Notes: generated by a model from the sequence alone, not told the origin. Shown: positions 294 through 63,556, numbered from the stretch's first letter. The stretch is 64,000 nt of DNA from Thalia democratica (GCA_965202585.1 OZ241831.1:60822001-60886000), one strand, 5' to 3'. Program-made: numbers and translations.

Positions 294-1099
294 GTTTTTT
301 GTATAAAATATTTAATTTTCTTTTTTACTTATCAATTTTTGAAATAACTATAATAAATGTAGTTCTGTAATAAAATACTATTATGCCTCTTTATAGTTAC
401 AAATTTTGCACGACAAAATTATTTACACTTTTTTAAAAACTAAACAACTTAACGTGCAGTTAAAGTCTATGTATAAATATAAACAGATTTTGTAAATATA
501 ATTTAGCATAAGGTACATAATATGGTTAAAAAAGCAATTATACTTCAAACTAATCACTGCTTTTTCAGCTTACCAAAGCAGTAACAATTGTATGAAAATT
601 ACAATATTTAACAAATAAGATTATTGTTATTGTGACATAATTTACTTAATTTACTGTAAAGTACAGGATATTTAAATATAATTATAAATGTACAAATTAT
701 CAAATTTAAACACTTTAATAAAAATAAACTCATTCTTGTATTAATAAACTGTCAAAACAAACAAAAAAATAATCATAACTTTAATAATTTTAAAAAATAC
801 TAATAGTTAATAATCAATATACATATAATAAATCCGAATTGTTTAAGTTTTTATTCTGTCAATTACATTTTTATTAAAAAAGTCTTTTTTGTCAAAACAA
901 TTTACATGTTTTCTATTTTAGCGCACTACATGCTTTCATCAGCAATACTTGTGTTCAATATAAAGCAATATAAAAAATATATAAACAACATGTATTTATA
1001 TATATAGAAAATAATGTAATTAAATAAACTTCAACACTTTCCACAGAGCCCACTTGATGGGCTTTTAAATAATTTATTATGAAAAGCAATTTAAAAAAA

Positions 1100-1141
1100 A
1101 ACATACGTTTCATAAAGCTAAATGCTTAAATCTTCAGCTAG
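1100..1141 (-). ncRNA. Degenerate minimal type I hammerhead ribozyme-like motif
   Basis: Minus strand CTAG-CTGAAGA-T-ttaagc-attta-gcttta-T-GAAAC-gtat-GT-T; homologous to the better copy at 61945-62001. Stem I is weak here. Confidence 0.4.
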
Positions 1142-1212
1142 TACGATTTGAAATAAATAGCACTTTGCTATACAATGATAAAAAAGTTATACAAAAAAAC
1201 AAAAAGATTATG

Positions 1213-2207
1213 CATGGTTGCCACTGATCAAGCTGAGAAAAATTTCCTGACTTTTCCTGACTTTTTCCTGACTTTATAACAAAATTTTCCTGACTTTTCC
1301 AAAACAAACTCTTAAAACAATTTTTTTTTTTAAATACATAATCTAACACTTAAAACTATATAAAGCTTTCACTCCAATTTTAATACAGGTTAAAAACAAC
1401 ATTTTTTGCTGAATTCTATCATCAAACTTCCAGTACATCACTTAGACCATCTGTGTATGATTGATGTTTGTAATAAACAGCTCTATCAGCAAAATACTTG
1501 TATTATTACCTTATAAACACAGCTTGTTTGAAAAACGACACAACTTTTTAGCATTTCCTAGCATAAATGTATCTAGATAAACAAAGGACATATAAGGAAC
1601 TTTTACAATTAAACCTTGAATTAATAACGAATTTTCACAACTAAAATCTAAAACAATAAAAATTTTTACAGTTGAAACCTTAAAACAATAAAGAACTTAA
1701 TCAAATCCTGTTTTTTTAAATGTATGTACTTTGATAAAACACTTTGATTCTAAAATTATGCTAGATAAACTTTTGTGTATATACCACAGTTTCACTATGG
1801 AAGTGTCCTTGCTACAGATCATCAATACTAAAAAGCTTACAAAATCTGCTTGTTCAAGTAGGGTACTTGTTCAATATGTTAATAGAAAATTTTTGCAGTT
1901 TTATAAAGGATATTTTACTAATCTATACCAGATAAAGGCATTGGAAATAAAATTAAATATTTTTGTAATTTATAGGAAAATTTTGGAATTTTTTTCTGAC
2001 TTTAAATGACTTTTAACTAATTTTTACCATTTGAAGGCTTTGGAAAACAAGGAACTTTGTAAATTTTAACTGACAAAATCTGACTTTTTTTTTTATTTTA
2101 TCAAATTTCCTGACTTTTTTTCAAAACCCCCCATTTTTTCCTGACTTTTGTCATTTTTTTAAACTTTTCCTGATTTCCTGACTTTTCCTGACCGAGTGGC
2201 AACCCTG
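1213..2207. mobile_element. Non-autonomous hAT-like DNA transposon
   Basis: TIRs CATGGTTGCCACT and AGTGGCAACCCTG, many subterminal TCCTGACT repeats, flanking 6-mers ATTATG (1207) and ACTATG (2208). The homologous site near 61566 lacks the element and has a single AGTATG. Confidence 0.8.
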
Positions 2208-2866
2208 ACTATGACGTATTTATTAAATATTGTACAGTACAAATATTCAGTACAAAAATTAATCTTTCAACCAAACAAAAATTAAAATTCACAAAACTAC
2301 AATTACATGACTGTGAAGTATTTTACAATTTATTGTATTTCAATAGAAGCATTTTTATATGTCGACAAGACGATATAAATTCAGTCCTTTTATTTAAACA
2401 ACCTTTATTTTTCAACGCATACACAACGGCCGTTGATTCTTTTAAACACAGCCTGCAAACAGGCTTATTACCACCTGCTATTGGCTTTTTATCACCTCAA
2501 AAGTTATTCTAAAATCAATGTTTTTGCGCTTTAGGTCACAAACATACTTTGAAAGCTCAGTCTCATTTTCATATAAATGATTAGCATATCGGAGTCTGAA
2601 CTGAGTTGAGCCAATGTAGAACTTCTTTTCAAGGTCAGACTTAACTATTGCCTTGTAAATAATGTTCCCTAAACGGCAATTGCTTATTTTCAAATTTTAC
2701 TTGCAGCCACCAGCGCAATTGTATTGATTCTGGATTAGCTTACTTATAAGATATATATACATATATATGTAAAAAAAAAAAGAAAATGTGAGCTCCATTT
2801 CAAAACAGTCAACTAGCTCACTCATTTATACAGTTTATAACCACAATATACAGCACCCTATCACAA

Positions 2867-2939
2867 GTTTCCGTAGTGTAGCGGTTATCACGTTCGCCTA
2901 ACACGCGAAAGGTCCCCGGTTCGAGCCCGGGCGGAAACA
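2867..2939 (+). tRNA. tRNA-Val(AAC)
   Basis: 73-nt cloverleaf GTTTCCG...CGGAAACA, anticodon arm TTCGC-CT-AAC-AC-GCGAA, TATAA at -31, T-run after. Absent from the right arm. Confidence 0.97.
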
Positions 2940-3236
2940 TTTTGGGTGTGCTTATTATCGTAAGTACGAAATGTTACAATAAAAATTATAAATAAGGTTT
3001 GTTGAGCACAAAGAAGTATTTATTTATATCAATCTGTACTAAAATTTTTCTTTACACCTCCAAAACTAAAACACGTATAAATAAAACTTTAGAGTGTTAA
3101 TTTTTTATTAACATGTTAATTAATAGTATTGGAAATTTAAACGCTGTTTTGAAAATAGGTAACTGTATACTTAAAAACTAGTTGCTAAATTAAGTATGAT
3201 AAACATCTTATTCCATATACAACTTAAAAGAGGATG

Positions 3237-3309
3237 CGCCCAACGTGGGGCTCGAACCCACGACCGTTGGATTAAGAGTCCAACGCTCTACCGACTGAGC
3301 TAGCCGGGC
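3237..3309 (-). tRNA. tRNA-Lys(CTT)
   Basis: GCCCGGC...GTTGGGCG, anticodon arm TTGGA-CT-CTT-AA-TCCAA; one of four identical copies. Confidence 0.97.
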
Positions 3310-3393
3310 ACGTTAGAAATAAACTTTTTGAGTTTATAAAGCCTTTGTGACGATGCTATGACGTAATAATGCATTGACTCACGTCAAAAAATC

Positions 3394-3465
3394 GGGCTCG
3401 TCCGGGATTTGAACCCGGGACCTCTCGCACCCAAAGCGAGAATCATACCCCTAGACCAACGAGCC
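3394..3465 (-). tRNA. tRNA-Pro(TGG)
   Basis: GGCTCGT...ACGAGCCC, anticodon arm CTCGC-TT-TGG-GT-GCGAG, 72 nt. Confidence 0.97.
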
Positions 3466-3647
3466 GCTTGTTTAAGAGGATATATTCAACATTATATTTT
3501 TCAAAAACTGCTGTCTATGACGTAATAATCCAGTTGTAAGCTCAATGTTTAGCTGCTGGTTATTCGATTGCTATATTTATGGTTTAAACTTAAGCTTTTA
3601 CTTGATCAGTTTGAAATGCGCTTGTGTGCTATTGACTACATTGTTAA

Positions 3648-4352
3648 GGCCATAGGGGGGGGTAGACCATGTTTTTTACAAGTTGATCTTATTTTATAGA
3701 GTTTTTACTAAGCTTCAAGATGCTTTTTACCGTTTTTAAAAATTCGAATTAGTTTTTGAGATATGACCAGCCAAAGTCGGGCCGCATAACAGGTTCCTTA
3801 TGGGGAAGGAAAACTAAAACGGCGAAAAAAGACTAATTCATTCAAAATCTATCTCCTCCTTCATTTTTTAAGCAATCTTCTTCAAACTTTCACAGTCTAT
3901 TCTTTATACAATAACAAAAAAACGTTATTTGTGACTTTAAAAAATTTCAAGTAAAAATACCTTTTTTTTGTAATTTTATGACAAAAATTAAAAAAAAAAG
4001 TGAATTTTCATCAAAAAAAATTTTTTTTTACAAAAAAAAGGTATTTTTACTTGAAATTTTTTAAAGTCACAAATAACGTTTTTTTGTTATTGTATAAAGA
4101 ATAGACTGTGAAAGTTTGAAGAAGATTGCTTAAAAAATGAAGGAGGAGATAGATTTTGAATGAATTAGTCTTTTTTCGCCGTTTTAGTTTTCCTTCCCCA
4201 TAAGGAACCTGTTATGCGGCCCGACTTTGGCCGGTCATATCTCAAAAACTAATTTGAATTTTTAAAAACGGTAAAAAGCATCTTGAAGCTTAGTAAAAAC
4301 TCTATAAAATAAGATCAACTTGTAAAAAACATGGTCTACCCCCCCTATGGCC
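3648..4352. mobile_element. Palindromic Kolobok-type MITE (TTAA target)
   Basis: ~325-bp arms (3648-3973 and 4028-4352) with only a few mismatches. Termini GGCCATAGGGG and CCCCTATGGCC, TTAA on both sides. The mirrored right-arm site has a single TTAA (60426-60429). GG terminus with TTAA fits Kolobok rather than piggyBac. Confidence 0.85.
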
Positions 4353-4368
4353 TTAACACTTATTTATT

Positions 4369-7300
4369 TTAGCTATAAACTATGTACATCATTTCTGAAC
4401 AATAATTGATTTCATACTACAGTATTTTTAATATATTGTTTACAATTTTGTACTGGAAATTCAAGAGCAAAAACAAGCTTATTTCATGTATTTTAATAAC
4501 CAATACTAGTTTAAAACTTTCAACAATTTAATCCACTAACCATTTGTGCTTCTGGCGAAATTTGCTTGTGGGTAAATAATTCTCTTTCTATTCGGAGTGC
4601 TATGTTGTCCATTACTGCTACAACCTAATAAAAAATACTTTGATTTAGTTAACAAATGTTTTAATTATATAACCGAACAAAAAAAACAAAAAGCATGTTT
4701 AATGAAGAAAAAACATTGAATTTAATTTAAAATGAGTTTTCATTAAATATTTTGCATCATTAAATGATCAAGCAAAAAAAAAAACCTTACCATCAATATA
4801 AAGAATTGAACGTATTTAATTTGTCAAAGAAAAGACTTATAAAATATAGTTAAAATTTTTTAAATAAGTTTATATAATTTTCATTTAAAGAAAGTTACAA
4901 ACTGCAAGGTTCATGTATTTTTACTTAAAAACAATTTAAAAAGGACATATAATTTTTAAATTTACTTTCTGATACTTATGTCATATCATAAAAAATATTA
5001 AAATTGTTTATTTTATTATAATTCTTGTGTTATATTAAAGAGTATTAAAAAGAACAAATATAAACAAATTACGTAAATATATGAAATTGTACTTTATGTT
5101 GTATACTCAGGTTTTTGTTCATTGTAATTTAGTTTTAGACTGACAAAATTTATAACTAAAAAACCTGTTACATATTTAAATTAAAAAAAAAAATTAGCGA
5201 TTTAAAGATTTGTTTTTTATTTATTAAAGAATGTCAACTCTTACAACTAGTACTTGTAAAATTTTTATGCATACTGCTTCTAATAACAAAAAACTAACTA
5301 TAACAGATTATAAATTTTAAAATACATATACAAACAAATAATCATTTCACTTAGTTTTACCTACTTATGATTAAACACAAAAAATGTTATTTATTTTTAG
5401 TACTTCACACTGATAATAATAAGGTTCAGCCAAGATAATTGCATTACAACAATATTTCAACACTATAACAGATCTTCAGGCACAAATAAACACATTAAGA
5501 ATAAAAGCATTATAATTCAATGACTAGCAAACTACTGTACTAATAAGTAATAAACGCTTTTACAATTAATCATATACAAAGACAAACAAGCAAAAAGTAA
5601 TCAAAAGTTTTTTTATAATAAGTAGAACTAAGTAAAGTATACATTTGCATTACAACAGTATTTCAATTAGCAGATCTTCAGGCACAAGTAAACATATTTA
5701 CAATAAAAGCATTTATATAACATAAATCAATGAATAGCAAACTACTATACTTATAAATTTTAAATATTTTTACAATAAATTATATACAACGACAAACAAG
5801 CAAAAAGTAATCAAAAGTTATTTGAATTAGTAGATTTAAGTAAAGTATACTTTTCAATTAAAAATAAATTATTTAAAATATATTCAATTAAAAAATATTA
5901 TAAGCAACTAAAAATACAAACACAGCATAACAAAAACTAAAAATTTTCTGGACTTGGATAGATTTTATATAAATTACTACATTAAAAACTATCAGAAAAC
6001 ATTTATTTGGAGAAAATTATGATAAACAAATTAAAGGAAATATAAGTCCTATTTTTTACAAAAACAACTATTCAGCCTTTTCTATTTACTATCCCCAGTT
6101 AATGTTGAGAAACTAAACTATCTAATTATTTTAAATATGTATTTAGAATATGACCATGTGAAACTTTTTGAAAAAAACAAAAAGGCGACCATGACGGGAC
6201 TCGAACCCGCAATCCCTCGATTCGAAGTCGAGTGCCTTATCCATTAGGCCACACGGCCGGTCTATTGAGAAGGGACATACGCATTTATAAATGCGCTTGT
6301 TTGGCTGAATACTCTCAAATAAAGCTCTGCATAGCAAATTTATGTGAGTAAAAGTTATTACTCACTTTTTTCAATTTCTCTCGTATTAAAGCGGCTTGCT
6401 AGCAATGCTAAGTTTGCTGTTTCTCTATGTAGTTGCAGAAACAAAATTTTATCTTAAATGATTTTAATTTAAATGTCATGTAAGGCATTATTGTGTTTAA
6501 ATATGCCAATTTATTAATTTTTAAGGTGGAGATGTTATACTACAAAAATAACCTTTAAGTTACTTTTCGAACTTTTTTTTGGAACTCTTATTATCAAATA
6601 TAAAATTAACAGATTTAATTTTACTATACAGTCTTTAACGAACTTACTTTTTTTTAATTCTGTTTAACTTAAATTAAACTTATAAGCTGATATTATAAAC
6701 TTTGTAAAAAGCATTTTTTTAATGATAAGAAAGTATAAGTTAGTAGTTTAATTTTCATTTTTGTAAATACTTATTATACTTCTATATACAATTTTCTAAT
6801 TCAAATTTGCTTCTATCGTAAAATTAATTATAGCTTCATATGTTAAAAACCTTTAACTTTACATAAAACTTTTTAAACTTATTTTATATTTATTTTTTGA
6901 CAGCTTATTTTACAATTCAAAATTGATAAAAGTTAACATCAATAATAAACTTAACATATATCAAATTATTTTTTAAATTATACATGCTATGAATATGATC
7001 AGATATGTTCAACAATAAAATAAGTATAAAGATAACTGCTGAAAACAATATTTTTAAGTAAAGTCAATCATATAGCTTTTTTTTTTTTGCAATAAGTGTT
7101 TTAACTTTATAAAATTAAAATCTTAGCAATCAAACTTCAATAGAAAGGAAATAATCTACTTTGTTGTAAGCAAAAACATTTATAGCAAATAAAAAGCAGA
7201 ACAATTTTAACATAGAAAGTATAAAAATCAAATAACTTAAAGATTAAAGTTATTTAAATATACGTAAAGATAAAATACATACCATTATAAATTAAAACAG

Positions 7301-10300
7301 ACAAGTTTATTTATTTGAAAGCATCGGGGTAAAAGTACGCATTACTTATAGATCAGAAAAAGTAGGGAAATATTTCTCCCTAAAAGATTCAATAAGTAGC
7401 TTGTATCAGAGTTGTCTTGTCTATAAATTTATGTGTCCAGGAGATCTGAACAACCAGTACATTGGTGAGACAGAAAGACAATTTTTCGTCAGAATTAAAG
7501 AACATGTGACCCCAACCAACAGTGCGGTGTTTAAACATATTGAAAATTGTGTATTTTGTACTAATTGTAAAAATATTTATAATTGTTTCAAGGTTATAAA
7601 AACGTGCACTTCGTATAATGAATTATTATCTTCTGAAGCTCTACTCATAAAAAAATTCCAGCCAAATTTGAATAATCAGCTTGGTCCTGATAAAGGATCA
7701 AGAGTAACTATTAATGTGTTTAAATAATCCATTTTGTTTTAATTGTTTATAAAAATCCATTTTTGTTAATTACTTGTCGTTTTAATTAGTTGTGTTTTTT
7801 ACAAATGATATAATTTCACTCAATTTATTTTGTCTTAGTTTAACTAGAGAGTGTTTAGTATTTTGATAAGGGAATATGGACATTCCGAAAGCGCTTAAGT
7901 TTTAATAAAGTTTATAATGAAAAAATTTGTTTGTCTTGTAGTTAAATGGTACTTAATTGCATTAAAAGGTCTAAATATATCTGAAGTTTATTTTAGTTTA
8001 GCAGTTATAGTTACTAAAATCGCAACTACTATTTTTCGATACATTTTTAAATAAAATAAAAGTTACATTTTCTTAAAGAGCTACTTTTAAGTAGAAACAA
8101 AACTGTAAGAAAAAAATGACTTTATTAGTTTACTTTATATATATATATATTACTATACATATTGTTTCAGCTACAAAAATCACTAGAATAATTTTCTAAT
8201 TTATTCATAAATAAGTTTGTTTCAAACAGCAATGTTTGTAGCATTGAAACCCAAAATAAAGAATTAACTTTTCATGTCAAATTTATGTTCTTGTAAAATA
8301 TATATGAAACATTGACAGCAGAGTCCCATGACAATTTTTTAAATAAACTATAACATCATGGAACTATTTGTCTTACCCTACACAAAAAAATCTTTACTAT
8401 AATGTGATTTCCTCAAAGTACTTATATGCAAGTAACATTAAACCTTGAAAATTAATTTAGGTTAATAACCTTAGTTAATCTAAACAAATATCATTGCATA
8501 AAAAAGAACTTTTGCTAAAATGAATACTTCAAATAATAATTGCTTAATTTAGCAATTACATATACAATAATTAAATTATTACAACTAAAAATATAAGCTT
8601 TTATAGGTTCTCACTAAAGTATTCTTCTTTTTTTTACAATTGGTATAAAATTACAACATTAAAACGTAAATAAAATGTAATACTAAAACAATCATCTAAC
8701 ACAACAAAATCATACCTAGTACGTTGTAAGCAGGTTCCTGTTGAGAACACACGAATCTTCTGTTCTTGAAGTGGTTGGTGATGCTGGGTGTTCTACTGTG
8801 TAACTTGCTAATATGAGGAGACTGGTGCCTACTGTGAAGCTTCATGTGAGGACTCACTTGCCTGCTGTGGAGTTTGTTCCTCATCTTCTGCGTTGTGAAG
8901 TTCATCTTCAGTTTTTGAAGTTCCCTGTTCTTCTCACCCACTGATGCCAGTAACTGTATGAATGAAACAGTTAAAAACTCATAAACAAAAACGAAAATAA
9001 ACGGTTTTGGTACTAATGTATAACTAGATAAGAGTAGTTTATAATAAATATTTTTGTGTATTTTTTAAAAAAGGAACACAATATTTTTAATTCTTCCAGT
9101 AACTGTTTAATGGGAATGGTTGTAGATTTTTTTGTAAACAATATATAACAGTAGTTTTCAACCTTAAAAAAATTTTTTGATTTGTGTAAACCAAAAAGGT
9201 TTTAGTTTCCAGACTTTATTTAGTTTATATTCTTTAAAATATTCATATTTGGATATGTTTAAACCAACTAATATTTCATATACAAAGAAGATTTATATGT
9301 ATAAGACAAACATTGTTAAAATTTTAGATTTGTTAACCAATAAATTATTTAACCATTATTTAAAATATAATCATATTTGAAACTTAATTCAAATTAAAAT
9401 AAATATTAACAAATTGATACTTTGAAATTCAATAAATTTAACATAAACATCTAACACATGATTAAGTGATTTCTCATCAAAATATAAGTTTTAATGCCTT
9501 TAAACCTTATCTACTAAAATTGTCATTTTGTTTGATTTTTATAAAACACTAACCTCACTGTGGCTAGTTTTAACAGACTTGAGTTCTTTCGATTGATCAG
9601 TGAGTTTTTGTGACAAAGAAATATTTTCATCCTTCAAGCTTGTAAAAGCGTGAGCGTATTTCTTTTCTATTTGCTCTATTTTTGCCTTGTAACTTTCTAT
9701 GATGTGGTCCTGAAAAAATGTAAATTGTTCAAGACATTTAATTCAAGAGACTTTTTAAATTTATTGAAATTAAATTTAATTTTATGAATATATAATATTT
9801 TGTACCTCTACTGTACAACCTATTATAAAAATTAGTCAACAGTAAAACATTTACAATGGTTATAAAAAATTTGAAATACTAATTAATCTTTATAATATTT
9901 AAAATCACATATATGAGACTAAAATTAGCTAAAACTTCATTTTGTAAATTATTAAAATCTAATAACTAATTTAAAAATTTTTTAACTTTTATAATAATCA
10001 CATAAATAAATAAAAAATTAAATAAAAAAACAAATAAAATATAAGTATTGAAACTGTGTTCATTCATATAAATTTTATACTTATTCAAAATGTAAAAACT
10101 AACATGCTGTATTGAGAATGTAATAAAAACAACAAACCTTATACAGGGAGTCTTGGGTGGTCTGAAATATCCAAAAGTTCATGGCTCTGGTGCAAATGTC
10201 CATGATGACATCTGGTTTGTGGCCAACCAGGGACATGGTCTTGTACCCTTCACTTGGGTTTAGGTTGACCCTGACAAACTCGTATTCCTCCCCCTTCATT

Positions 10301-11304
10301 ACGTGGCCACACACTGGACACTTGTGCTGTTGTACTGTTTGATTGTAAAAAGTATATTTAAATATGTTATATATAAAGTACAAAATTATACACTACAACT
10401 ATGTGCTGTTGCACAGTGAAATTATAAGATTTTGAAATACTTCTATTATAATATATTTCTATTGATGTTATAAGAAATATTTCAAACAATTAAATAAGTA
10501 ATCGAACACGAATAGCCTAGAAAAAGCAACATGTGTGTAGTTTAAAATATTATAATTAGAATAAGATGTAAAAAAAGCAAATTTACAATGAATATAAGCT
10601 TTTTTTTGTATATATAAGGTGTAATAAAGCTTACAAGGCTAGTTTAAAATATATGGAATGGAAATAAAGCCAAATATAAAAATTTTAAATTACTTGGTGA
10701 TGAAATTATACTTCTAAAAACAAAAGACATCAGATTTAGGCAAATATTTGTAGAGCTAAAGAAGAGGCAGGTATATAGCTAGACAAAATTAAGGTACTTC
10801 AAAACAATGTAAAACAACAACGTTTTGCATATCTTTTTTACTGTTATGCTTTAGCTAAACGTACTTTAAACAAATTGTATTTAGATGAAACCAATTCTTA
10901 ATCTAAAATTTAGATTTGAAACACTAAAATTGTTGAAGTAACATTAGATATATTTATTTTAAAAACATTTTGATGGTCAAATAAGTTTATACCCAAATTT
11001 AAAATAGCTCTACTTTTAAATATGTATACATTGGACAGCACAAAGCTATTTTAAAAATATAGCTTTTCTAAAACAAAACCTAAACAAAAAATACTACCAA
11101 ATTAAAAATCATTCAAAAAAAGCGCAATTCAAATCATGCTGCAAAGCACACATGTGTAGTAAGTAGTAGCAATTGTATTTTCTCACCTAAAAACTTGTTG
11201 CCGTGCTCATTGCAGAAAATGTGTGAGCAGCAAGTCACCCAAGCGTGACCGTTTGACAGCGGCTTGCCACACTCTCTCAAATTGCACTTCAGTTCGCAGT
11301 CCAT
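4369..11304 (-). CDS. HEI10: HEI10/CCNB1IP1 meiotic RING E3 ligase, apparently intact (~272 aa predicted)
   Basis: Exons 11304-11187 (MDCELKCNLRECGKPLSNGHAWVTCCSHIFCNEHG), 10334-10138 (CPVC...NPSEGYKTMSLVG.KPDVIMDICTRAMNFWIFQ), 9709-9554 and 8953-8716 (EKNRELQKL), then probable 4624-4541 and 4394-4369. All junctions are GT-AG with matching phases (1,0,0,1,1); total 819 nt. Motifs match CCNB1IP1 (AWVT.CSHIFC..HG, LSPSEEYK.M.L.G, AL.FW.YQ). The last two exons are less certain; an alternative end is TAG at 8696. Confidence 0.88.
5440..5850. repeat. Diverged ~205-bp tandem duplication, left arm only
   Basis: TTGCATTACAACA...CAGATCTTCAGGCACAA...GACAAACAAGCAAAAAGTAATCAAAAGTT...AAGTAAAGTATAC occurs twice in tandem. 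The right arm (~59190-59400) has one copy. Confidence 0.75.
6186..6258 (-). tRNA. tRNA-Arg(TCG)
   Basis: GGCCGTG...CATGGTCG, anticodon arm CTCGA-CT-TCG-AA-TCGAG; lies in predicted HEI10 intron 4. Confidence 0.97.
7310..7975 (+). mobile_element. 5-prime-truncated Penelope-like retroelement (GIY-YIG C-terminus)
   Basis: ORF 7401-7727: LVYKFMCPG...YIGETERQFFVRIKEH...EALLIKKFQPNLNNQ. The tail has GGAAT-atggac-ATTCC-GAAAGCGC. Absent from the mirrored right-arm position (~50900). Boundaries are approximate. Confidence 0.85.
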
Positions 11305-11902: not shown

Positions 11903-12021
11903 TGTCAGAAGTGGGATTCGAACCCACGCCCACAATTGTGGACCAGAACACTCAGCATTGCATAGCAATGAAGCATTATTCCGCTTGAGTCTGGCGCCTT
12001 AGACCACTCGGCCATCCTGAC
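11903..12021 (-). tRNA. tRNA-Leu(CAA) with ~35-nt intron
   Basis: GTCAGGA...TTCTGACA; CCAGA-CT-CAA-G, then intron, then TTCTGG; long variable arm. Confidence 0.95.
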
Positions 12022-17976: not shown

Positions 17977-17984
17977 CATATCCA

Positions 17985-28863: not shown

Positions 28864-28871
28864 TTAACATG

Positions 28872-52679: not shown

Positions 52680-53890
52680 ATGGCGTCCTCTTAAGTAGTG
52701 AGAACTACCAATCCTTTAACCAACAGTTAAATAAGTCAGAGTTTGAGGAAAATAAGATACAAACCACTTGTAATAAAATTGGGCCCTACAGAATTGAAAA
52801 TGAAAGTAAGGTAAGCACCAATAGGCAGCAGCAGGCTTTAGATTATGAAAGTGCACTAGAAGTGGAAGACTTGGAGATAGAGAAACTCACAAAGCTAGTA
52901 GCCCAAGCTAAAATGTTAGAAAAGAAGGCCATCTTAAAAAAGGAATTAAACTCTATTTATAATAGATTAGATGAAGGTCAAAACAAATTCCAAAGTAAGA
53001 TAAGTTATAGTGACAGCAGTCCTGTATATACTTCTTCCAACACTGTAGGGGCTACACATAACATCAGTCTGAAACAAAGGACTTTAGAGAACTGCAAACT
53101 TTTTCCCCAGATTGAAGCCATAAGGGACCCTGTTATTGAGTTAAGATTTTTTGAGGATAGGTGTAGTACTTATGGCATCACTGATGATACAGAAAAGTTT
53201 GAAATTCTTCAAAGAATCTGGCCGCGTGCTGACATAATAGACTTTGTTGAAGCTTATGATGAGGACCGAACATACTACAATTTGTTTAAATTTTTAGAAG
53301 GCAAAGGCAGTAAGTTGCCTCGAATCTTAGGTGTGAGCCCATCATGGTCGGGACCAGTAAAATTTCAAAACTTGTTTCTGTCAGCCAAACAATGGGCAAG
53401 AGCAGCTGAGGAAGACAGAATTAAATATTTTATGTATGTACATGCCCCAGATAATCTGAAAAAGAAAATTAAAGAATGTTTTGGGCTTGGTTATAATGAG
53501 TTCTTAAGACGGGCTGAATCAATATGCAACATTGAAGAACAGAAAGTTTGTGAACAAGCTAAAAATTTTACATATGAACCTAATGTTTTAAAATATAATA
53601 AGCGCTACACTACTAAACAAAGGTGGCAAGATAATATTCCACAAAGACAAAAATATTTTAGAAATTATGATCACAAACGTACCCAGGGGTATTCGGGAGA
53701 AGTTTATAACCAACGTGAAAATCATGACACAAACATTAATGCCAACACTATGCCATCAAACTTTCTTTGCAAAAATCACAGAAAATATGGTAATAACACT
53801 TATGAATGTGATGCACCCGATACTTGCAGAATGGCTGGCATCACAGTACAACGTCAAACAAAAAACGAGCTCCCATCTTCAAGACATTAA
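52493..53890 (+). CDS. gag: Gypsy Gag (465 aa)
   Basis: Open ORF; C-terminal CKNHRKYGNNTYECDAPDTC (CHCC-type knuckle of CsRn1-like elements); precedes pol. Confidence 0.85.
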   Translation: MSHLENINDKLPAAGPENKPVRRSPRLQEKSEQKGQVDYLPTVSHPDQTEALDVGSPTSVAHNGVLLSSENYQSFNQQLNKSEFEENKIQTTCNKIGPYRIENESKVSTNRQQQALDYESALEVEDLEIEKLTKLVAQAKMLEKKAILKKELNSIYNRLDEGQNKFQSKISYSDSSPVYTSSNTVGATHNISLKQRTLENCKLFPQIEAIRDPVIELRFFEDRCSTYGITDDTEKFEILQRIWPRADIIDFVEAYDEDRTYYNLFKFLEGKGSKLPRILGVSPSWSGPVKFQNLFLSAKQWARAAEEDRIKYFMYVHAPDNLKKKIKECFGLGYNEFLRRAESICNIEEQKVCEQAKNFTYEPNVLKYNKRYTTKQRWQDNIPQRQKYFRNYDHKRTQGYSGEVYNQRENHDTNINANTMPSNFLCKNHRKYGNNTYECDAPDTCRMAGITVQRQTKNELPSSRH

Positions 53891-56800
53891 GAGGACAGAA
53901 AACCTCTTACTATGCCTACTGAACCTACTTTTGTAGGTTCCACTAACAAACCATGGCGGTCTAATCAGCCATCACAGAGCTGTCAGCCAAACGTTAAAGG
54001 TGAGATGCGTCATGATGTTAAGGCAAGTCAGAACTTCAACACCAATTGGTCATTTGCTATCACAAACACCCCGTCAATTGATCCTAAAACCTTACCACAG
54101 AGTCTACTATTTGTAAAGGACAATGTTACTAATGTACTTTTTTTGGTTGACTCTGGGTGCGAAATTTCAATATTGCCAAAGAATCTCACAAATGGTATTA
54201 ACAACTATTTCAAACCATTCAGTAAATCCATAAAAGGAATTGGCAACAATGAAATCCACCCAATAGGAAGCGCTTGTGTTGAACTTCAAATAGGTAATTT
54301 AGATATTGTTAAACACAACTTCTGGGTTACACAAGAATCCCAGAGTTATGGAATATTAGGCATGGACATCTTAATGGTCAACAAATTAACAATATGCCCA
54401 TTTGCATTAAAGTTGTGGCACCAACAATCTAACCAAACAGCTAAATTGTTCAAGGCTGCAAACTTGCCTACACCAGTAGTTTTGTCAACAAATTCAGGAG
54501 AAGTTAAATACAGTAATAATACCACGTTAGAGGCAAAATGTGAAACACTACTGATGAACTACCCTGAGCTTACAAAAACTCCTGATTACACTGCTCCGAG
54601 AAAACACAACCACTTTCTAGAGATTATAGTTGACAACTATAAACCGCGAATGATTAAGGCGCGGAGATGTAATTTTACTTGTCAACAAAAAGTAGATAAA
54701 AACTATTCAGATCTAATTGCGAGAGGAGCGGTTGTAAAGGGAGATGCCAACATGTGTGCATCACCAATCACGGTAGTGCCCAAAAAAGATGGTGATTTGT
54801 GTCGATTACACAGTTTTGAATGCCCACACACGTCCATTTTCATACCCGCTACCGCGCATAGATATGCTTTCGGAAAGAATTCCGGGAGGTACCTCTTTTT
54901 TCAGCACATTAGATCTTAAAGAGGCTTACTATAGTTTGCCTCTCCTTCCAAACTCACAAAAATATGCTGCTATCATAACTAATTCCGGAGTATTTGTCCC
55001 TAAGGTGACTTCTTTTGGGTTGCGGAATGCGCCAACACGTTTCCAGAAGTTTATGGATAGTATCTTGTTTTCATGTAAGGCCTTCACGTTTGTATATTTA
55101 GATGATATTCTTGTGTTTTCAGATTCCGCGGACAGTCACATATCACATTTAAAACAGGTTTTGGAAACATTGTCAACAAACGGTTTATTTTTAAATAAAG
55201 CAAAATGTTCTTTTGCAAAGACTAAGGTAGACTTTTTAGGTCATACAGTAGGTGTTGACGGGGTTGATGTTATGGAATCTAAAGTCGAAGCGATAAAAAA
55301 ACTACCATTACCAACAACACGAAAAGAATTAAAAAGGTTTATTGGTATGGTCAGTTATTATCATAAATTGATTCCAAAGTTATCTGAAGTAATGGCACCA
55401 CTTACAGAAATTTCAGGGGGACCTAAAGAGAGCAATAGGAAAATCATTAAACTTACAGACAGTCAAACCAAAGCTTATCATGACACAATAGCTATGTTAG
55501 TTGAATCAGCAACAATAAGCTACGAGGATCACACTAAACCTCTGATTCTATTCACTGACGCATCGGACAGTCATGTCGGTGCAGTGTTAGAACAAGAAGG
55601 TAAAAATGGGGAAATGCAACCTCTGGCCTTCTTTTCTAAAAAACTTCCCCCATCCAAGCAGGTACGTCACACTTTTTATAAGGAGCTTCGTGGAGTATAC
55701 TTGGCTCTTAAGCACTTTCAAAGTAGAGTATTGGGGAGGTCTTTAATAATTAGAACTGACAGTAGATCAGTAGAAAGGGCCATTACAAATGAGGTGGCTA
55801 ACCAATCTCCTGCGGAACAACGTTGGATATGTGCTATAAAAGAGTTTAATCCAACAGTAAAACATATTGACGGTATAAAAAACGTGGTGGCCGATAGCTT
55901 GAGTAGACCACCACAAAGCACGGCGATGTATGTGAAAGTATGCAAAGAGGATTCAGATTATGTGTACACGTCTGAGTCGAATAAAAGTGACAGTGAGTCA
56001 GATGATTACAGTATTATTGACGAAGACCCACTCATAAACTCCAATTTTTTTAGCCCGGAATAAAAAAACACAGATACAGAGGCAATTAGTTCTAAAAAAA
56101 TAAATAAGAAAGCAATTGCGACATTACAAGCTAAGGAATCAGGGTTAATGGATATTGTATGTAAAATGGATAAAAGAATTGAATATCTAGAACCAGAAAA
56201 ATTAGCAGTGGTGATAGAGGAAGGCAACAAACGAGTGATTCTTCCCGAAGCCTTGCGCCTAAGAGTATTCAACATGGCTCATGATAGATTGGCACTTGGG
56301 CATAGAGAAAACAATCGAGGCCATTGCAAAAGACTACTACTGGCCCACTATGATCAAAGACATAACACACTGGGTCAAAAGTTGTGTAGTATGTCAAGCA
56401 ACAAAGGTTGCGAGGTATAATCGGCCAAAAATTGGTTTCTTTCCGGACAATACTGAACGTTTCCAGTTTGTTCACATAGATCTTGTGGGTCCGTTAAATG
56501 AGATTTCTTGCAACAATAAATTTATTTTGACAGCTAAAGACCGAGCAACAGGGTTCCTTGTAACTATGCCAATTCCAGATAAAAAAGCTGTGACTGTTAG
56601 GAATGCTTTTTTTCAATGCTGGGTAGGTCCGTTTGGGGTCCCACAAGTGGTCGTTTCCGATAATGGCCAAGAATTTGTAAATACTGTTTTGACTGAAGCC
56701 TTCGAACAGTTGGGCATAGACCATCGTTTAATTAGCCCGTACAGCCCCCAAACAAATGGTTTTATAGAGAGGCAACATAAAACTATCAATGTAGCACTTC

Positions 56801-57339
56801 GTGCTTTGTCCGATAAGACAAATTGGGCGCTACATTTGCCCCTAATAACTGCAGCTATTAACAATACCTTTGTGGAAGGGTCACTGTACACCCCATCTCA
56901 GTATGCCCTAGGGGCATCACTCAACCTTTCGGGTAGTGTAATGTTCAATGAAATTAAGGAAAATTCACTCATTACTACACCTAATTTATTAGATACCGAA
57001 ACTTTTTTAAATACAATGGCAAAAACTGGTAGACAGTTCAAACGTTATAAAAATAAGCCTTATTATGAACCAGGTATATTTGAGTGTGAATGGGTATGGC
57101 TCAGAAGACAAAACAAGCGGAAACTTAGTTCACTTTATCACGGCCCGTATAGAGTTCATTCTTGCTCAGAACAAAGCATGGTAATTCAGAAGAACTCGGG
57201 GTTAGTAAAAGTCTCTATAAGAAACGTGAAAGCTTACGTGCCCAGAGACATAAAATCTTCTGCCACAGGTAATTACAATTTAAGGGAACGTAAAATTCCA
57301 ATAAATTACGCCGAAACATCAAGCTCTGATGATTTATGA
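53891..57339 (+). pseudogene. pol: Gypsy Pol (protease, RT, RNase H, integrase) with frameshifts and a stop
   Basis: FLVDSGCEISILP; LDLKEAYY, FGLRNAP, YLDDILVFS; TDASD; H..LG..KT, CVVCQ, VHIDLVGP, SDNGQEF, NGFIERQHKT, GPY. Frameshift near 54795, in-frame TAA at 56061, frameshift near 56293. Confidence 0.93.
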
Positions 57340-57956
57340 TCTCTAAAATATCATTAATCAATTTATAAAATTCTTTGTATTCTTGGGTTAAGTTAGGCAT
57401 GACAGTTGAGTGATGATTCTGTATGACTAAACATATGTTTTTTTTTTTTGTGAAAAAATTTTGATTCTAATACCAATTGATACTATATTGCCAAAGATTT
57501 TTTTTTTTGAGTTTAATATTTTGATTAAGAGTTGTTTATCTATTTATAGTAAAAATAATATTTGGAATTGTAAGCGTAAATTTATTGATATTTCATTTTA
57601 TTTATTGTGCAAATACTATTATGTTGATACCATTTTTTTTTTACCATGTTGTCTAAGATTTTTTTACTGAGTTAGTTATTCTGATAAAATTTATGTTATT
57701 ATATAAATTTTTTTTATTATGTGAAAACCAAATACCTAATTTTTCTCTCTCCTATTAATATTCTACTTAAGTTTGATTTTTAAATTAGTTCATGACTATT
57801 TTGAATTTGTTTGTTCTTTACACTGTTCCTTTTATTTTGTTTTTTTGCTGTTTACCAATTAGATTTAGGTGAACATCACCTTAGAATTCTTCTAGCAGGA
57901 GGCAAGCAGAGGATAGAGTGATAATGCTCTTCAAAAAAAAGGACTACAGAAGATAG

Positions 57957-58728
57957 TGTAATGAATACGTGCATTATTCATTATTCAAAGTTGAGCTCAG
58001 AGAATATTTTGAGTTTGACACGCTTCATTGCACTAGCCAATGAGAATCATCTGACGTGTTTCAAACTAATTCTGATGCAACTAAATATCAGAAAATGACA
58101 GTCAGTGTATTTGTAAGCAGTTGGTGAGTTGGTGTGCAGCTGGAACTACCTTGTATTGATTTGTGATTGTGTATTGTAAGTATTGTTTTGTGTTAAAGTG
58201 AATATTTTAACTGGTATAAAATTGTTTTAATATTTAAGCCAGGTTTATAGTTAATAATTTATTCTTTTACAGTTTCTTCTTTACTAAAAGTTTTATTTAA
58301 TTTTTAGTTTATTGTTTAAAGTCTTTTAAAGAAATTTAAATAGATTGTAGTTTCTAAAAAGTTTGTCATAGTAATTTATAGTTTTGTATATGCTATTATT
58401 TCTTGTTTTGTTTTATATAAGAGTCATCACTTAAAACTGTCTGTCTGATTTATATAAAATAGTCTAGAAAAGCTTTAAGTGTTTTATATATATTTTCCAC
58501 TGATAATTACAAATTAGCACTTATAAATAAGTTATAGTACTATGTCCCACTTAGAGAATATTAATGATAAGTTGCCTGCTGCGGGTCCTGAAAATAAGCC
58601 TGTTAGAAGGTCACCCCGCTTGCAGGAAAAGTCTGAACAAAAAGGTCAGGTTGACTATCTGCCCACAGTAAGTCACCCTGACCAAACTGAGGCTTTAGAT
58701 GTTGGGTCACCAACATTGGTAGCCCACA
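57957..58728 (+). repeat. 3-prime LTR
   Basis: 772 bp; repeats the first ~62 gag codons (ORF 58542-58733). Confidence 0.93.
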
Positions 58729-58835
58729 ATTGAAAAAAAAATTTTATCACAGCAATTTGCTATGCAGAGCTTTATATGAGAGCATTCAGCCAAATAAGCG
58801 CATTTATATACCCGTATGTCCCTTCCCAACAGACC

Positions 58836-58908
58836 GGCCGTGTGGCCTAATGGATAAGGCACTCGACTTCGAATCGAGGGATTGCGGGTTCGAGTCCCGT
58901 CATGGTCG
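58836..58908 (+). tRNA. tRNA-Arg(TCG)
   Basis: Identical mirror of 6186-6258; TATATA at -31; T-run terminator. Confidence 0.97.
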
Positions 58909-60220
58909 CTTTTTTCTTTTTATTTTTAATAAGATACATAAATATCATAAAACAGTTTCACATGGTCATATTCTAAATACATGCACAAAGTGTTTAGATA
59001 GTTTAGTTTGTCAACATTAACTGAGGAGAGCATTATAGACTTATTTTTTCTTTAATTTGTATATCATATTTTTTCTAGTTTTTATGTATTAAGTTATATA
59101 AAATCTATTCAAAACATGTTTTGTTTATACTATGCTATGTTTGTAGTTTTAGTTGCTTTGATATTTTATAACTTATTTTTAATTAAAAAGTATACTTTAC
59201 TTAATTCAACTTATTACAAATAACTTTTGATTACTTTTTGCTTGTTTTTCTTTGTATATAATTGATTGTAAAAGTGTTTATTAATTATTAGTTTAGTAAT
59301 TTGCTAGTCATTAATTTGTAGTATACAAATGCTTTTATTCTAAATATCTTTTTTTGTGCCTGAAGACTTAGTGTTGAAATATTGTTGTAATGCAATTATA
59401 TTGGCTGAACCTTATTGTTGTTAGTGTGAAGTACTAAAAATAAATAATATTTTGTGTTAAAGTAGGTGGATAAAGTGATTATTTGTTTGTATATGTATTG
59501 CAAAATTTATAATCTATTATAGGTAGTTTTTAGTTTTAAAAGTAAGTGACATGGAAATTTTACAAGTAATTGTAAAAGTTGACAGTTTTTAACAGATAAA
59601 TAACAAGTCTTTAACCTGCTTAAATTTTTTTAAATCTAAATATGTATGAGGATTTTTAGTTATGAATTTTGTCAGTTTAAAATTAAATTATAATGAACTT
59701 ATACAGGAGCAAAACAACGTAAAGTACAATTTCATATATTTACAATTTCTTTTTTTATTTTAACTTAAATATAATACAAAAGCTATAATGTTGAAGGATA
59801 GTTTTAATATTTTTTATTATAGAACATAAATACAGAAAGTAAATTTAAAAACTAAATGTCCTTTGTAAATTGTATTTTAAACTTAAGTTTTTAAGTAAAA
59901 ATACTAAAACTAAGCAGTTTGTGATTTTTTTACTTTTCTTTAATTAGAAAACTCTATCAACTTAATTTTAAAATTTTAACTGTATTTTATAAGTTTTTTT
60001 TTTGTAAAAAGTAAATTCTTTCAATTTTTTTATATTGATAGTAAGGTTTTTTTTTATGCCAGAACATTTAATGATGCAAAATTATTTTAAGAAAAATCAT
60101 TTAAAATTATATTCAATGCTTCTTTTCACTTCATTAAAACAGCTTTTTGTTTATTTGGTTCGGTTGAGCTTTTATATAATTAAAACATTCATTTAATTAA
60201 ATACAAATACTTTTTATTAG

Positions 60221-60304
60221 GCTGTAGCAGTAATGGACAACATAGCACTCCGAATAGAAAGAAAATTATTTACCCACAAGCAAATTTCGCCAGAAGCACA
60301 AATG
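60221..60304 (+). pseudogene. HEI10: Right-arm copy of probable HEI10 exon 5
   Basis: TTTTTATTAG acceptor, GTTAGT donor, 84 nt, only 2 differences from 4541-4624 amid ~80-85% identical flanks. Phase-1 reading GCSSNGQHSTPNRKKIIYPQANFARSTN. Confidence 0.65.
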
Positions 60305-60608
60305 GTTAGTTGAATAAGTTATTGAAAGTTTTAAACTAGTGCTGACATTTAAAATATTGTAGTATCAAATCAATTATTGCTCCAGAAATGATGTATACAT
60401 AGTTTATAGCTAAAATAAATAAGTCTTAACAATGTAGTCAATAGCACACAAGCACATTTTCAAACTGATCAAGTAAAAACTTAAGTTTAAACCATAAATA
60501 TAGCAATGTAATAAATAGCAGCTGAACATTGAGCTTATAACTGCATTGTTACGTCATAGACATCAGTTTTTGGGAAATATAATGTTGACAATTTGCAATC
60601 GTATAAGC

Positions 60609-60680
60609 GGCTCGTTGGTCTAGGGGTATGATTCTCGCTTTGGGTGCGAGAGGTCCCGGGTTCAAATCCCGGACGAGCCC
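60609..60680 (+). tRNA. tRNA-Pro(TGG)
   Basis: Identical mirror of 3394-3465. Confidence 0.97.
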
Positions 60681-60761
60681 GTTTTTGTGTCTGTTAAAGC
60701 ATTATTACGTCATAGCATCGTCTCAAAGGCTTTAAAAAGTCAACAAGTTCTTCTCTAACGT

Positions 60762-60834
60762 GCCCGGCTAGCTCAGTCGGTAGAGCGTTGGACTCTTAAT
60801 CCAACGGTCGTGGGTTCGAGCCCCACGTTGGGCG
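60762..60834 (+). tRNA. tRNA-Lys(CTT)
   Basis: Identical mirror of 3237-3309. Confidence 0.97.
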
Positions 60835-61183
60835 CACTTTTTTTATTTTAAGTATCTGGAATAGATACTGTTTAATTTTGTCATAATTAAACTGACAATT
60901 TGTTTTTAAGTAAACAATTACATATTTTAAAAAAGCTTTCTAAATTTCCAATACATTTAATTAAAATATTAATAAAAAAATTTACACTCTTAAAATACAA
61001 TAACTTATTATGTATTGCATAGTCACTTAATTGTAGTTTGAAATATAATTTGTGAATTGAAATATATTTTGTTTTTTTGGATGAAGATTAATTCTGCACT
61101 TAATTTTTGCACTGTACTTATTTAATAACTACGTCATTTGTATAACTGTTATATCATTGTTTAGCTATTTATTTCAAGCTGTA

Positions 61184-61227
61184 CTAGCTGAAGGTAAAGC
61201 ATTTAGCTTTATGAAACGTATGTTCTG
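61184..61227 (+). ncRNA. Degenerate hammerhead-like motif (mirror of 1100-1141)
   Basis: CTAG-CTGAAGG-TAAAGC-attta-GCTTTA-T-GAAAC-gtat-GT-T-CTG; the core has a substitution. Confidence 0.35.
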
Positions 61228-61323
61228 TTTTTTTTTTTAATATTTACATTTCTTAATAAGTTGTTTAAAATCCCTTAAATTGGGCTCTGTGGAAAGTGTT
61301 GAAGTTTATTTAACCACATTATT

Positions 61324-61326
<3 letters not shown>

Positions 61327-61364
<38 letters not shown>
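61327..61364. repeat. (TA)n microsatellite
   Basis: About 19 TA units. A second TA run at 62031-62051 brackets the hairpin insert. Confidence 0.95.
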
Positions 61365-61369
<5 letters not shown>

Positions 61370-61455
61370 AGGTTAATGTTTAAACGTAAACACTTTCAAC
61401 TGAGCCCACTTGAAGGGCTTTTAAATAATTTATTCAAATGGCGATTTTAAAAATT

Positions 61456-61512
61456 CTGGAACATATGTTTCACAAAGCTTTAATTTTTCATAAAGCTTTG
61501 ATCATCAGCCAG
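61456..61512 (-). ncRNA. Candidate hammerhead ribozyme (antisense mirror of 61945-62001)
   Basis: Exact reverse complement of 61945-62001 within the hairpin. Confidence 0.55.
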
Positions 61513-61944
61513 TTAAATTCAAAATACAAAGCACTGTGCTAAACAAAGATACAAAAGTTATGCAAAAAAACAAAAAACAGTATGACGTAATATTGTACAT
61601 TACAAATATTCAGTACAAAAATCGATCTACCTTCTAACTAATTAAACAACTAAAATTAACGAAAACAACAGTTAATTGACTATAAAATGCTTCAAAATTT
61701 GTTGTGTTTTAAAAGAAGCTTGTCGACATATAAAAAAGCTTCTTTTAAAACACAACAAATTTTGAAGCATTTTATAGTCAATTAACTGTTGTTTTCGTTA
61801 ATTTTAGTTGTTTAATTAGTTAGAAGGTAGATCGATTTTTGTACTGAATATTTGTAATGTACAATATTACGTCATACTGTTTTTTGTTTTTTTGCATAAC
61901 TTTTGTATCTTTGTTTAGCACAGTGCTTTGTATTTTGAATTTAA

Positions 61945-62001
61945 CTGGCTGATGATCAAAGCTTTATGAAAAATTAAAGCTTTGTGAAACATATGTTCCA
62001 G
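61945..62001 (+). ncRNA. Candidate minimal type I hammerhead ribozyme
   Basis: CTGG-CTGATGA-T-CAAAGCTTT-loop-AAAGCTTTG-T-GAAAC-ATAT-GT-T-CCAG: stems I, II and III all pair. Stem III is the palindrome ACATATGT; stem II is closed by U-U. Confidence 0.6.
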
Positions 62002-63556
62002 AATTTTTAAAATCGCCATTTGAATAAATTATATATATATATATATATATACATTTTTAATATTTTTTATATTGCTTTCTATTGAACACAAATATTGCCG
62101 ATGAAAGCATGTAGTGCGCTGAAACACCTGTACAAGAAAACAAAAACATGTAAATTAGTGATAAAAAAAACAACGGATTAAAACAATCAACTTAATTAAG
62201 ATTGACTTTTATACTATACAAATATCATAGTTGTAAGCATGATTACGTAGTTTATAAATATAAAAACCAAGTTTTTAGTTTAGTTGTTTGTTTTAATTCG
62301 TTGTTTTTTTTTAACAGATATTACACAACATACTAAAATAAATAACAAGGTATTTCTACATTAGATTTACTAAGATAATCTTAATACTATGTGTTATTAC
62401 CAAGTAGCTTAAGATTGCTTGATCATAAAAATTATTTTATAATTTTTTGCTAAGTAATCAATAAAGTTAAAAGTTCATGATTCAGAATTACTTCTTATAA
62501 CGAATTTAAATAATTTACTGTAAAAAAGTGTTATTATTAGTATACTATATTGATAGTTTTAAAAGTATTGAATAACTAAAAGTTTCTTTAGGATAAACAA
62601 TTAAGTATCATTTAATAATAAAAGTTTTAAGTATTAATTTAAAAATAATAAAGAAATAGTTATGAATGTTTCACAAAGTTCAGATTAAAAGCCACTTTAT
62701 TTATTAAGTCAAGTTTACATTAATAAAAACAAATGTTAAGTATATAGCATAATTTTTTTTATGACTATTACCAATTTGTTCAAATATTTCTAAATTTAAG
62801 TTTTAAATCATAGATAATTATTTTTGCTATATTTTCACGGGTTTAGTTTTTATTTGAGTATTTACACCAAACAATGTTTCAGTTGAATTACCAATTGTTG
62901 TTGAATTCAATAATTTACTAACTGTTTTTTATATTAAATAAAAGTTAATTAGAAACTGAACACATCAGCGGTTAAACAAATTTAAGAAAAATAATCTTCA
63001 AAAAAAGTATACGGATCATATTATAAACAACTAATGCAATAAATATATAATTCTGTTTCCAAGCTTAGAACTTTCTAATCAATTCAGCAATCCAATATTT
63101 TTAAATTTTAGTTTTTTTGTCTTGAGTTAAAAGTTTCTAAAGTCAATGTCGATTTTAGTAACAGAAGGGCGTATTAGGTTAAATGGATCTTAATTTAAGT
63201 AATTTTAAGCTTTTTTTATTTTCAAGTACAGATTTTATTAGTAGTCTATTTTCTATCCTGAGTTATGTTAAGAAATATACAAATGTTAACTTTATAATTC
63301 AGGCATATTGTTCAAAGTGTTTGCGTTACCTCGCGTTACACAAAACCAAAGTTTTTTCTTAATATGTTTTATGACCTAATTTAAATAGTACAAACGTTTT
63401 TATCTTTACTTTTATTAATTACAATCAAAAGTTTCGTCAACAGTTGATGTTAAGTTACTAATCCTTGACGAATCTTTTTTCACGTCAGTCAATGCATTAT
63501 TACGTCCTAGCATCGTCACAAAGGCTTTATAAATCAATATAGCTCATTTCAGACGT

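Follow-up and report, generated by a model that had tools for sequence, protein, structure and literature searches.

An old inverted repeat with a locally homogenized inner block in a multicopy tRNA/HEI10 array of Thalia democratica

The inverted repeats of mammalian sex chromosomes, such as the palindromes P1–P8 of the human Y and those of the primate X, are kept alike by arm-to-arm conversion (PMC3723533, PMC8327919, PMC8981503). For their annotation, arms of ≥8 kb with ≥99% identity were required (PMC8327919), and a signature of GC-biased conversion, a feature that is not obligatory for such palindromes, was reported for the primate X palindromes (PMC8981503). Maintained inverted repeats were also described on the autosomes of Caenorhabditis (PMC1803023). 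On the other side stand palindromic duplications that are not homogenized, such as the mouse chr12 SD12A1 arms with ~93% identity (PMC13688818) and the palindromic collinear blocks of Folsomia candida (PMC5490193), as well as the amplicons formed by fold-back, origin-dependent inverted-repeat amplification or breakage-fusion-bridge cycles (PMC10766186). Here, we analyzed a stretch of 64,000 nt of Thalia democratica (GCA_965202585.1 OZ241831.1:60822001-60886000, hereafter the window), which lies on contig C7 of an 802-Mb animal genome with ~24% GC and carries two mirrored units of transfer RNA (tRNA) genes, each with a HEI10-like gene. As judged from the sequence, the two arms are probably old inverted copies of a unit that occurs five or more times. 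Their inner ~7.7 kb was probably converted repeatedly from arm to arm, and the distal part of the right arm probably exchanged sequence with a further copy.

All comparisons rest on the assembled sequence, and 230 kb around the window (C7:60720001-60950000) were taken for self-BLAST. Positions are given in the window frame, in which negative values lie to the left of the first letter of the stretch and values above 64000 lie to the right of the window. The unit on the left arm is named L and that on the right arm R, while A, B, and E are further copies outside the window (Table 1). The inverted homology was detected by a repeat search and by self-BLAST against the reverse strand, and the identity profile was read in 500-bp windows. 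The homology between the arms, which are mirrored around a 3.05-kb spacer, was far above chance. A single BLAST high-scoring segment pair joined 10879–21893 with 35985–24943 at 96.2% identity over 11,095 columns, and collinear blocks at 75–93% reached outward to 977/61357. The homology passed the left end of the window and extended to -3200 in L and 64499 in R. The substitution identity was 98.4–100% for 13.9–21.9 kb, with dips at 17.9–18.4 kb and in the final 500 bp, and the identity between L and R reached 99.6–100% at 19.4–21.4 kb, compared to 91–93% at 10.9–13.4 kb and 75–86% in the outer blocks. The mirrored arms and the tiers of ~99, ~91, and ~80–85% described in the initial annotation were thereby reproduced, and both the sliding-window and the self-comparison checks showed that the identity along the arms is not uniform. 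A smooth decay away from the spacer was not recovered, however. The identity dropped in a step at about 14.0–14.2 kb, and an island of lower identity was located inside the block at 17.8–18.2 kb.

The tRNA genes were called by ARAGORN and Rfam. They were mirrored on both arms as expected, but eight pairs were found in the window instead of the nine first counted. Half of these pairs (Arg-TCT, Ile, Asp, and Arg-ACG) lay in the inner block, one was an intron-containing tRNA at 11903/34818, and the other three (Arg-TCG, Pro, and Lys) were distal. The tRNA-Val at 2867 had no partner because that segment is missing from R and B.

The tRNA/HEI10 unit of ~25 kb, which combines about ten tRNA genes with a single HEI10-like gene, was present in at least five copies, whose orientation alternates (A> <B L> <R ... 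E>) along ~165 kb of C7, with head-to-head joints at A/B and L/R and a tail-to-tail joint at B/L. The five copies, all with a GC content of 25.1–25.3%, were aligned with MAFFT after the arrays and the long terminal repeat (LTR) element private to R had been excised. The alignment was read in 1-kb windows, and maximum-likelihood (ML) trees were built for an inner, a mid, and a distal partition. In the inner zone (13.8–21.9 kb), L and R were 98.2–99.9% identical compared to 87–96% for the remaining pairs, and the tree contained an (L,R) clade with 100% support and terminal branches of 0.006–0.007. In the mid zone (9.8–13.8 kb), all ten pairs showed 90–95% identity, L–R was no higher than L–A or L–B, and the tree was star-like, with L closer to B than R. 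In the distal zone (-1.2 to 8.8 kb), the identity of R and B was 96.6–98.7%, while that of L and R was 77–90%, equal to L–B. The distal tree was ((R,B)100,E)100, with branches of 0.009 and 0.013 for R and B, and L grouped with A. Copy B is a direct repeat of distal R, ~61–68 kb to its left.

At a resolution of 200 bp, the divergence between L and R equaled the family baseline up to about 14.0–14.2 kb and was below it thereafter. Moreover, derived sites shared by L and R (against A=B=E) made up 4.0% of the inner block and 0.4% of the mid zone (15 sites). Only between about 14.2 kb and 21827 are L and R thus each other's nearest relatives. Since the identities of 91 and 80–85% are the pairwise level of the family, they represent baseline divergence and not a decayed kinship of L and R, and the 97–99% identity of distal R to copy B indicates a recent partner other than L. 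A single 60-kb palindrome with outer arms that drifted apart, as proposed initially, is not supported: the unit has at least five copies, the alignment and the trees place L and R outside ~14.2–21.8 kb no nearer to one another than to A, B, or E, and a decay of the distal right arm in situ does not fit its similarity to B.

The homogenized block specific to L and R comprised ~7.7 kb with ~99% identity. Over 13680–21827 (8,148 bp), 80 substitutions and 12 indels were counted, corresponding to a substitution identity of 99.0%. The differences were overdispersed (index 3.5, p=2.5e-10), and the heterogeneity in age persisted after scaling by the local divergence of the family (chi-square 111, 12 df, p=3e-18). 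Positions 15983–17175 contained 0 differences compared to 15.6 expected (P=1.6e-7), despite a divergence of 9.6% across the family in this segment, and in the windows at 13.7–14.2 and 17.7–18.2 kb the divergence between L and R was 0.5–0.6 of the baseline. A separate patch with 94–96% identity between L and R was located at 9.4–9.9 kb. The uneven ages of the sub-blocks require several exchanges of different age. A dispersed repeat of ~780 bp occupied the same site in both arms (20907–21690 / 25147–25930), which fits a transfer between the arms. In addition, the innermost 1.65 kb (20239–21893) was specific to L and R, and A, B, and E carried other, common sequence there, in agreement with the reported clustering of rearrangements at palindrome centers (PMC8327919).

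The spacer was single-copy, with no second copy within the L/R pair, and was 83–90% identical to both arms of P2 and of P3, two palindromes of a second unit type (V) that flank the array. At the inner ends of the arms, 66-bp edges differed at 13 positions and by one indel, while the adjoining 969 bp were 100% identical. The 66-bp element recurs in the V-type units of P3 and at one further locus, ~1 Mb away; at both places it directly adjoins the sequence homologous to the right end of the spacer. Because this element is part of V-type sequence, its junction with the arm-specific sequence must have been formed once and then duplicated in inverted order. The divergence of the edges has reached the level of the family, so that the inverted repeat must be old and the identity next to the edges secondary. 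Conversion would be expected to fail at edges without homology on one side. The claim of an old inverted repeat homogenized beside its center was therefore supported by the diverged 66-bp edges, the sub-blocks of mixed age, and the restriction of the (L,R) clade to the inner block. Judged by paralogous copies in one genome, the similarity of the arms exceeds what their age would permit, as in concerted evolution.

Terminal inverted repeats of a transposon that formed the spacer were considered as an origin of the 66-bp edges and rejected, since all five occurrences in the genome lie in V-type sequence. The spacer also contains a dispersed repeat of ~165 bp (about 24716–24879) with many copies elsewhere at 84–91%. 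Dozens of copies of the ~780-bp repeat, up to 95% identical, were found on all large contigs.

We propose that L and R are head-to-head inverted copies within an alternately oriented array of at least five units, and that their inverted repeat would be about as old as the family (~8–13% divergence). Non-reciprocal recombination of one arm with the other would have rewritten the inner ~7.7 kb more than once, with tract lengths from roughly 0.5 kb up to several kb. Conversion, which may still be acting, would keep this block at ~99%, while the similarity of L and R outside the block would be the family baseline. The distal 12–15 kb of R would have exchanged sequence with copy B. The apparent decay of identity from the spacer would then be a mosaic of three histories and not a single gradient.

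Several observations weigh against this proposal. Old variants retained in the block were few, as 13% of the inner differences between L and R had both states in the outgroups, which is about the estimate for homoplasy. The GC enrichment predicted by biased conversion was not seen in the comparison of the five copies, and the 84 AT-to-GC versus 59 GC-to-AT changes at derived sites shared by L and R represent only a weak excess. The island at 17.8–18.2 kb may stem from mutable tRNA flanks and not from a tract boundary, and the edge of 66 bp is short and thus a small sample. Within the block, the trend of divergence with distance from the center was weak (rho 0.43, p=0.09). Furthermore, the sister palindrome A/B, with a spacer of similar size, showed no high-identity center, with a divergence of 4–13% throughout and ~11% beside the spacer. 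This indicates that conversion is not general to this architecture, and a general center effect is not supported. On the other hand, the divergence of P2 rose from 0.2% at the center to ~2% at 9 kb (rho 0.54, p=0.017), and that of P3 from ~1 to 5–7% outward (rho 0.70, p=0.011). A preference of conversion for the center, though not general, is thus possible. In yeast, recombination between inverted repeats declines as the distance between them grows, which would fit such a preference and is noted as a lead only.

The center-high trends of P2 and P3, together with the peak of identity beside the spacer, the lower values outward, and the position of HEI10 outside the homogenized block, would also be expected from one inverted duplication of ~60 kb in which conversion falls smoothly with distance from the spacer and the outer arms and HEI10 diverged in place. 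But this explanation is unlikely. From 9.8 to 14 kb, L–R is not above L–A or L–B and L does not group with R; distal R resembles B at 97–99% and L at 77–90%; the profile shows a step and an internal island where a slope is predicted; and A/B has no gradient. The switches between the trees already contradict it for the outer 45 kb. A similarly low probability was assigned to a single recent event that rewrote the inner ~8 kb of one arm from the other by long-tract repair, break-induced replication or fold-back re-duplication, followed by ordinary mutations at locally variable rates and no further conversion. In its favor, the inner differences are mostly singletons, split 30 versus 31 between the arms, and A/B is not homogenized. 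The flanks of tRNA genes are frequently highly mutable, and the island at 17.8–18.2 kb encloses two such genes. However, the heterogeneity in age survives the scaling by local divergence (p=3e-18), a stretch of 1.2 kb with a fast baseline (9.6%) is free of differences, and the patch of 94–96% at 9.4–9.9 kb lies apart from the block.

An assembly artifact, in the form of a fold-back chimera, an inverted joining of two haplotypes, or a spurious duplication that produced the B-like distal R, was considered very improbable. The long 33-bp arrays between proximal and distal R can mislead assemblers, and the divergence of ~2% between B and R is similar in magnitude to the heterozygosity of many marine invertebrates. 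But the 230 kb examined contain zero N, and the divergence of ~1% between the arms includes 12 indels and is patchy in age. The spacer is a unique sequence with tRNA genes of its own, bordered by old, diverged edges. Moreover, R has private insertions, and the sequences on either side of the B-like block are not alleles of the flanks of B, with 88% identity on one side and zero homology on the other.

Compared with mammalian palindromes, the locus shares the inverted arms, the unique spacer, a block of ~8 kb at ~99%, and implied tracts of several kb, as well as a rearranged center of symmetry, here a foreign V-type spacer next to 1.65 kb that are peculiar to L and R. Against the annotation rule, the identity is 99.0% over 8.1 kb, but the block specific to L and R is ~7.7 kb, and the 60-kb span falls short with 96% over 11 kb and 75–86% beyond. 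Unlike the mammalian cases, only the inner ~7.7 kb is homogenized, to 99.0% and not 99.9%, and no GC bias was seen. The homogenized block contains tRNA genes but not the protein gene, and the pair belongs to an array with five or more members, which would also exchange in direct orientation. The invertebrate, non-Y repeats of Caenorhabditis likewise have arms that stay more similar than expected from their age; they are pairs of genes spanning a few kb, demonstrated by cross-species comparison, whereas the outgroups here are paralogs of one genome. As inverted copies at family-baseline identity, the L/R arms resemble over their outer two thirds the unhomogenized duplications of mouse SD12A1 and Folsomia candida, from which the locus differs by its homogenized core and by the second, direct exchange partner of one arm.

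The strictly alternating head-to-head and tail-to-tail copies are shared with fold-back-type amplicons, and, also as in these, one arm continues collinearly into the spacer at A/B. Unlike them, the copies are old (8–13% diverged) and appear reshuffled by conversion, and no junction-level signature is recoverable. The star-like tree of the mid zone fits a burst of amplification, and the joints have since been rearranged by the foreign spacer and by insertions of transposable elements. The structure needs no new mechanism. Two specific routes were rejected. A simple tandem duplication in which the pair A/B gave rise to L/R does not fit, since distal B–R is at 98% but A–L is at 80–93% there, and proximal B–R is at 88–96%. 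One fold-back event that formed R from L as far as the array does not fit the mid zone of R, which is close to no copy.

The HEI10/CCNB1IP1-like gene of L, as read from open segments on the minus strand, has four predicted exons for a RING domain, a second zinc-binding segment, a coiled-coil, and a tail with about three 11-aa repeats. Exon 1 matched Pfam zf-RING_5 right at the curated cut-off, and for exon 2 an Atlas feature search, which covers named clusters only, ranked the cluster “E3 ubiquitin-protein ligase CCNB1IP1” second (0.80), which we take as a lead. In a six-frame search of the whole genome, exon 1 was found five times and exon 2 six times, all within the array, one per unit plus an extra exon 2 in R. 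The gene is located in the mid zone, and its presence on both arms outside the homogenized block agrees with the initial annotation. The copies had been described as diverged, but the exons tested were 97–100% identical in protein across the five copies, and the nucleotide differences were mostly synonymous. Exon 2 of A and E differed by 13 synonymous and 0 non-synonymous changes, and exon 1 was identical in four copies. Judging from these substitution patterns, the five copies look functional and under purifying selection. The 33-bp (11-aa) array is the expanded tail repeat of HEI10, with one unit in A, 18 in B (-11472 to -10847), one in L, two in E, and the two long arrays in R. The expansion is restricted to the B/R lineage, which is another tie of R to B.

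Both arms carried the private insertions noted initially, namely the 33-bp arrays and the LTR element on the right and the Penelope-like GIY-YIG fragment on the left. The protease, reverse transcriptase, RNase H, and integrase of the LTR element lay in separate open frames, and the element is missing from B and L. Neither the open reading frame (ORF) at 2478–2693 nor the first one of the LTR element had a Pfam match. Hairpin-like elements were found at 3656–4345 and 61422–62035, with inverted arms of 318 nt (99%) and 300 nt (100%), respectively. As each is private to one arm, they are younger than the last exchanges there.

The window belongs to a large tRNA gene cluster. In the 230 kb, ARAGORN called 86 tRNA genes besides the tRNA-Gly of the spacer, in an order repeated unit by unit, while the leftmost ~33 kb contained none. 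P2 and P3, which carry tRNA genes for Gly, Lys, Ser, Asp, Val and others, were alignable straight across their centers. The B/L tail-to-tail joint was a self-inverted stretch of 2.8 kb (C7:60817036-60819810, -4964 to -2190) centered at about -3577, with 93–98% identity a few hundred bases off the center and 81% at the center. The tRNA-Ile and tRNA-Asp genes (17903–18056 / 28792–28945) sit in the sole island of the block that retains 4.5–6% divergence between L and R. Each arm had its own substitutions in these genes, and the Rfam scores were 62.9 bits in L and 64.9 in R for tRNA-Ile, and 55.4 in L and 51.3 in R for tRNA-Asp. Another island, at 13600–14000 / 32830–33230, diverged by 1.7–3.7% across the five copies compared to 8–13% in the neighboring sequence. 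Rfam gave zero matches for 13.4–14.4 kb and no clear ORF was found there; the island may be a regulatory or RNA element.

Sequencing runs were also compared. Two runs labeled organism A contained fractions of 0.60 and 0.58 of the words of the 6-kb center and may derive from the sample of the assembly itself. A run labeled organism B contained 21% of the sampled words of positions 20400–26400, which suggests a close relative at roughly 5% divergence, and four marine metagenomes contained 6–14%. A marine metagenome run (2016) contained 3 of 11 words of the right junction stretch, too few to count, and an exact 43-nt junction pattern had no match among metagenome contigs.

Table 1. Coordinates of the units, zones and genes in and around the window (window frame unless C7 is given).
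Feature	Position	Strand	Remarks
Copy A	-49116 to -26356	+	
Copy B	-23300 to -3969	-	
Copy L	-3200 to 21893	+	
Copy R	24943 to 64499	-	
Copy E	95898 to ~114700	+	
Palindrome P3	-64548 to -52101 (C7:60757452-60769899)		type V
Palindrome P2	77156 to 95907 (C7:60899156-60917907)		type V
L distal part	1–9800, continues left to about -3200	+	tRNA-Val, Lys, Pro, Arg-TCG
L-private insertions	about 1213–2207, 3649–4352, 7317–7983		within L distal part
GIY-YIG (Penelope-like) fragment	7401–7727		left arm
L mid zone	9800–14200	+	L–R 90–94%; HEI10 exons 1–2; intron-containing tRNA 11903–12021
L homogenized block	14200–21827	+	tRNA Arg-TCT 16833, Ile 17903, Asp 17985, Arg-ACG 19965
Left arm edge	21828–21893	+	66 bp, ~80% identical to right edge
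Spacer	21894–24942	.	V-type unit fragment; tRNA-Gly, Lys-CTT, Ser-AGA
Right arm edge	24943–25009	-	66 bp; in V-type units elsewhere contiguous with right end of spacer
R homogenized block	25010–32630	-	tRNA Arg-ACG 26797, Asp 28792, Ile 28871, Arg-TCT 29950
R mid zone	32631–36780	-	family-baseline identity; intron-containing tRNA 34818–34936
R-private tandem duplication	36815–50104	+	period ~8 kb; unique flanks of duplicates 95–96% identical
33-bp arrays in R	37439–42261, 45436–50104		146 and 141 units
R distal part	49465–64000, continues to 64499	-	tRNA Arg-TCG, Pro, Lys, Lys, Val; nearest copy B
LTR retrotransposon private to R	51904–58252	+	300-bp LTRs 98% identical
HEI10/CCNB1IP1-like gene, copy L	8699–11304	-	approximate open segments
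L HEI10 exons	exon 1 11176–11304, exon 2 ~10162–10341, exon 3 ~9542–9742, exon 4 ~8699–9064	-	
R HEI10 exons	exon 1 35560–35688, exon 2 36550–36729	+	
R extra HEI10 exon 2	42274–42453	+	TGA stop
HEI10 exons outside window	A C7:60783160-60784336; B C7:60808954-60810111; E C7:60926050-60927219		

Homogenized palindromes are best known from mammalian sex chromosomes, and here one was found in an AT-rich marine animal, within a tRNA gene cluster. The paralogous copies serve as built-in outgroups and locate both limits of homogenization, the outer one at about 14.2 kb and the inner one 66 bp before the spacer. They also show that exchange of a single copy with two partners is possible, inverted near the center and direct in its distal part. 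An identity “gradient” of a palindrome may thus be a baseline plus unrelated exchanges, and outgroup copies are needed before it is read as distance-dependent conversion.

In Arabidopsis, the number of crossovers is controlled by the dosage of HEI10 (PMC5358726, PMC9556546). As a tentative idea, which we regard as rather doubtful, the ~165-kb array could be a palindromic amplicon built by fold-back and evolving in concert, with center-weighted conversion as in L/R, P2, and P3, that holds the only HEI10-like genes of the genome. It would include five HEI10-like copies under purifying selection, one with a tail expanded about 150-fold, and about 60 tRNA genes. If true, it would be an invertebrate counterpart of the mammalian ampliconic palindromes, around a dosage-sensitive factor of meiotic crossover. 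That all five HEI10-like genes of the genome are located in one amplicon may matter for meiosis in this species.

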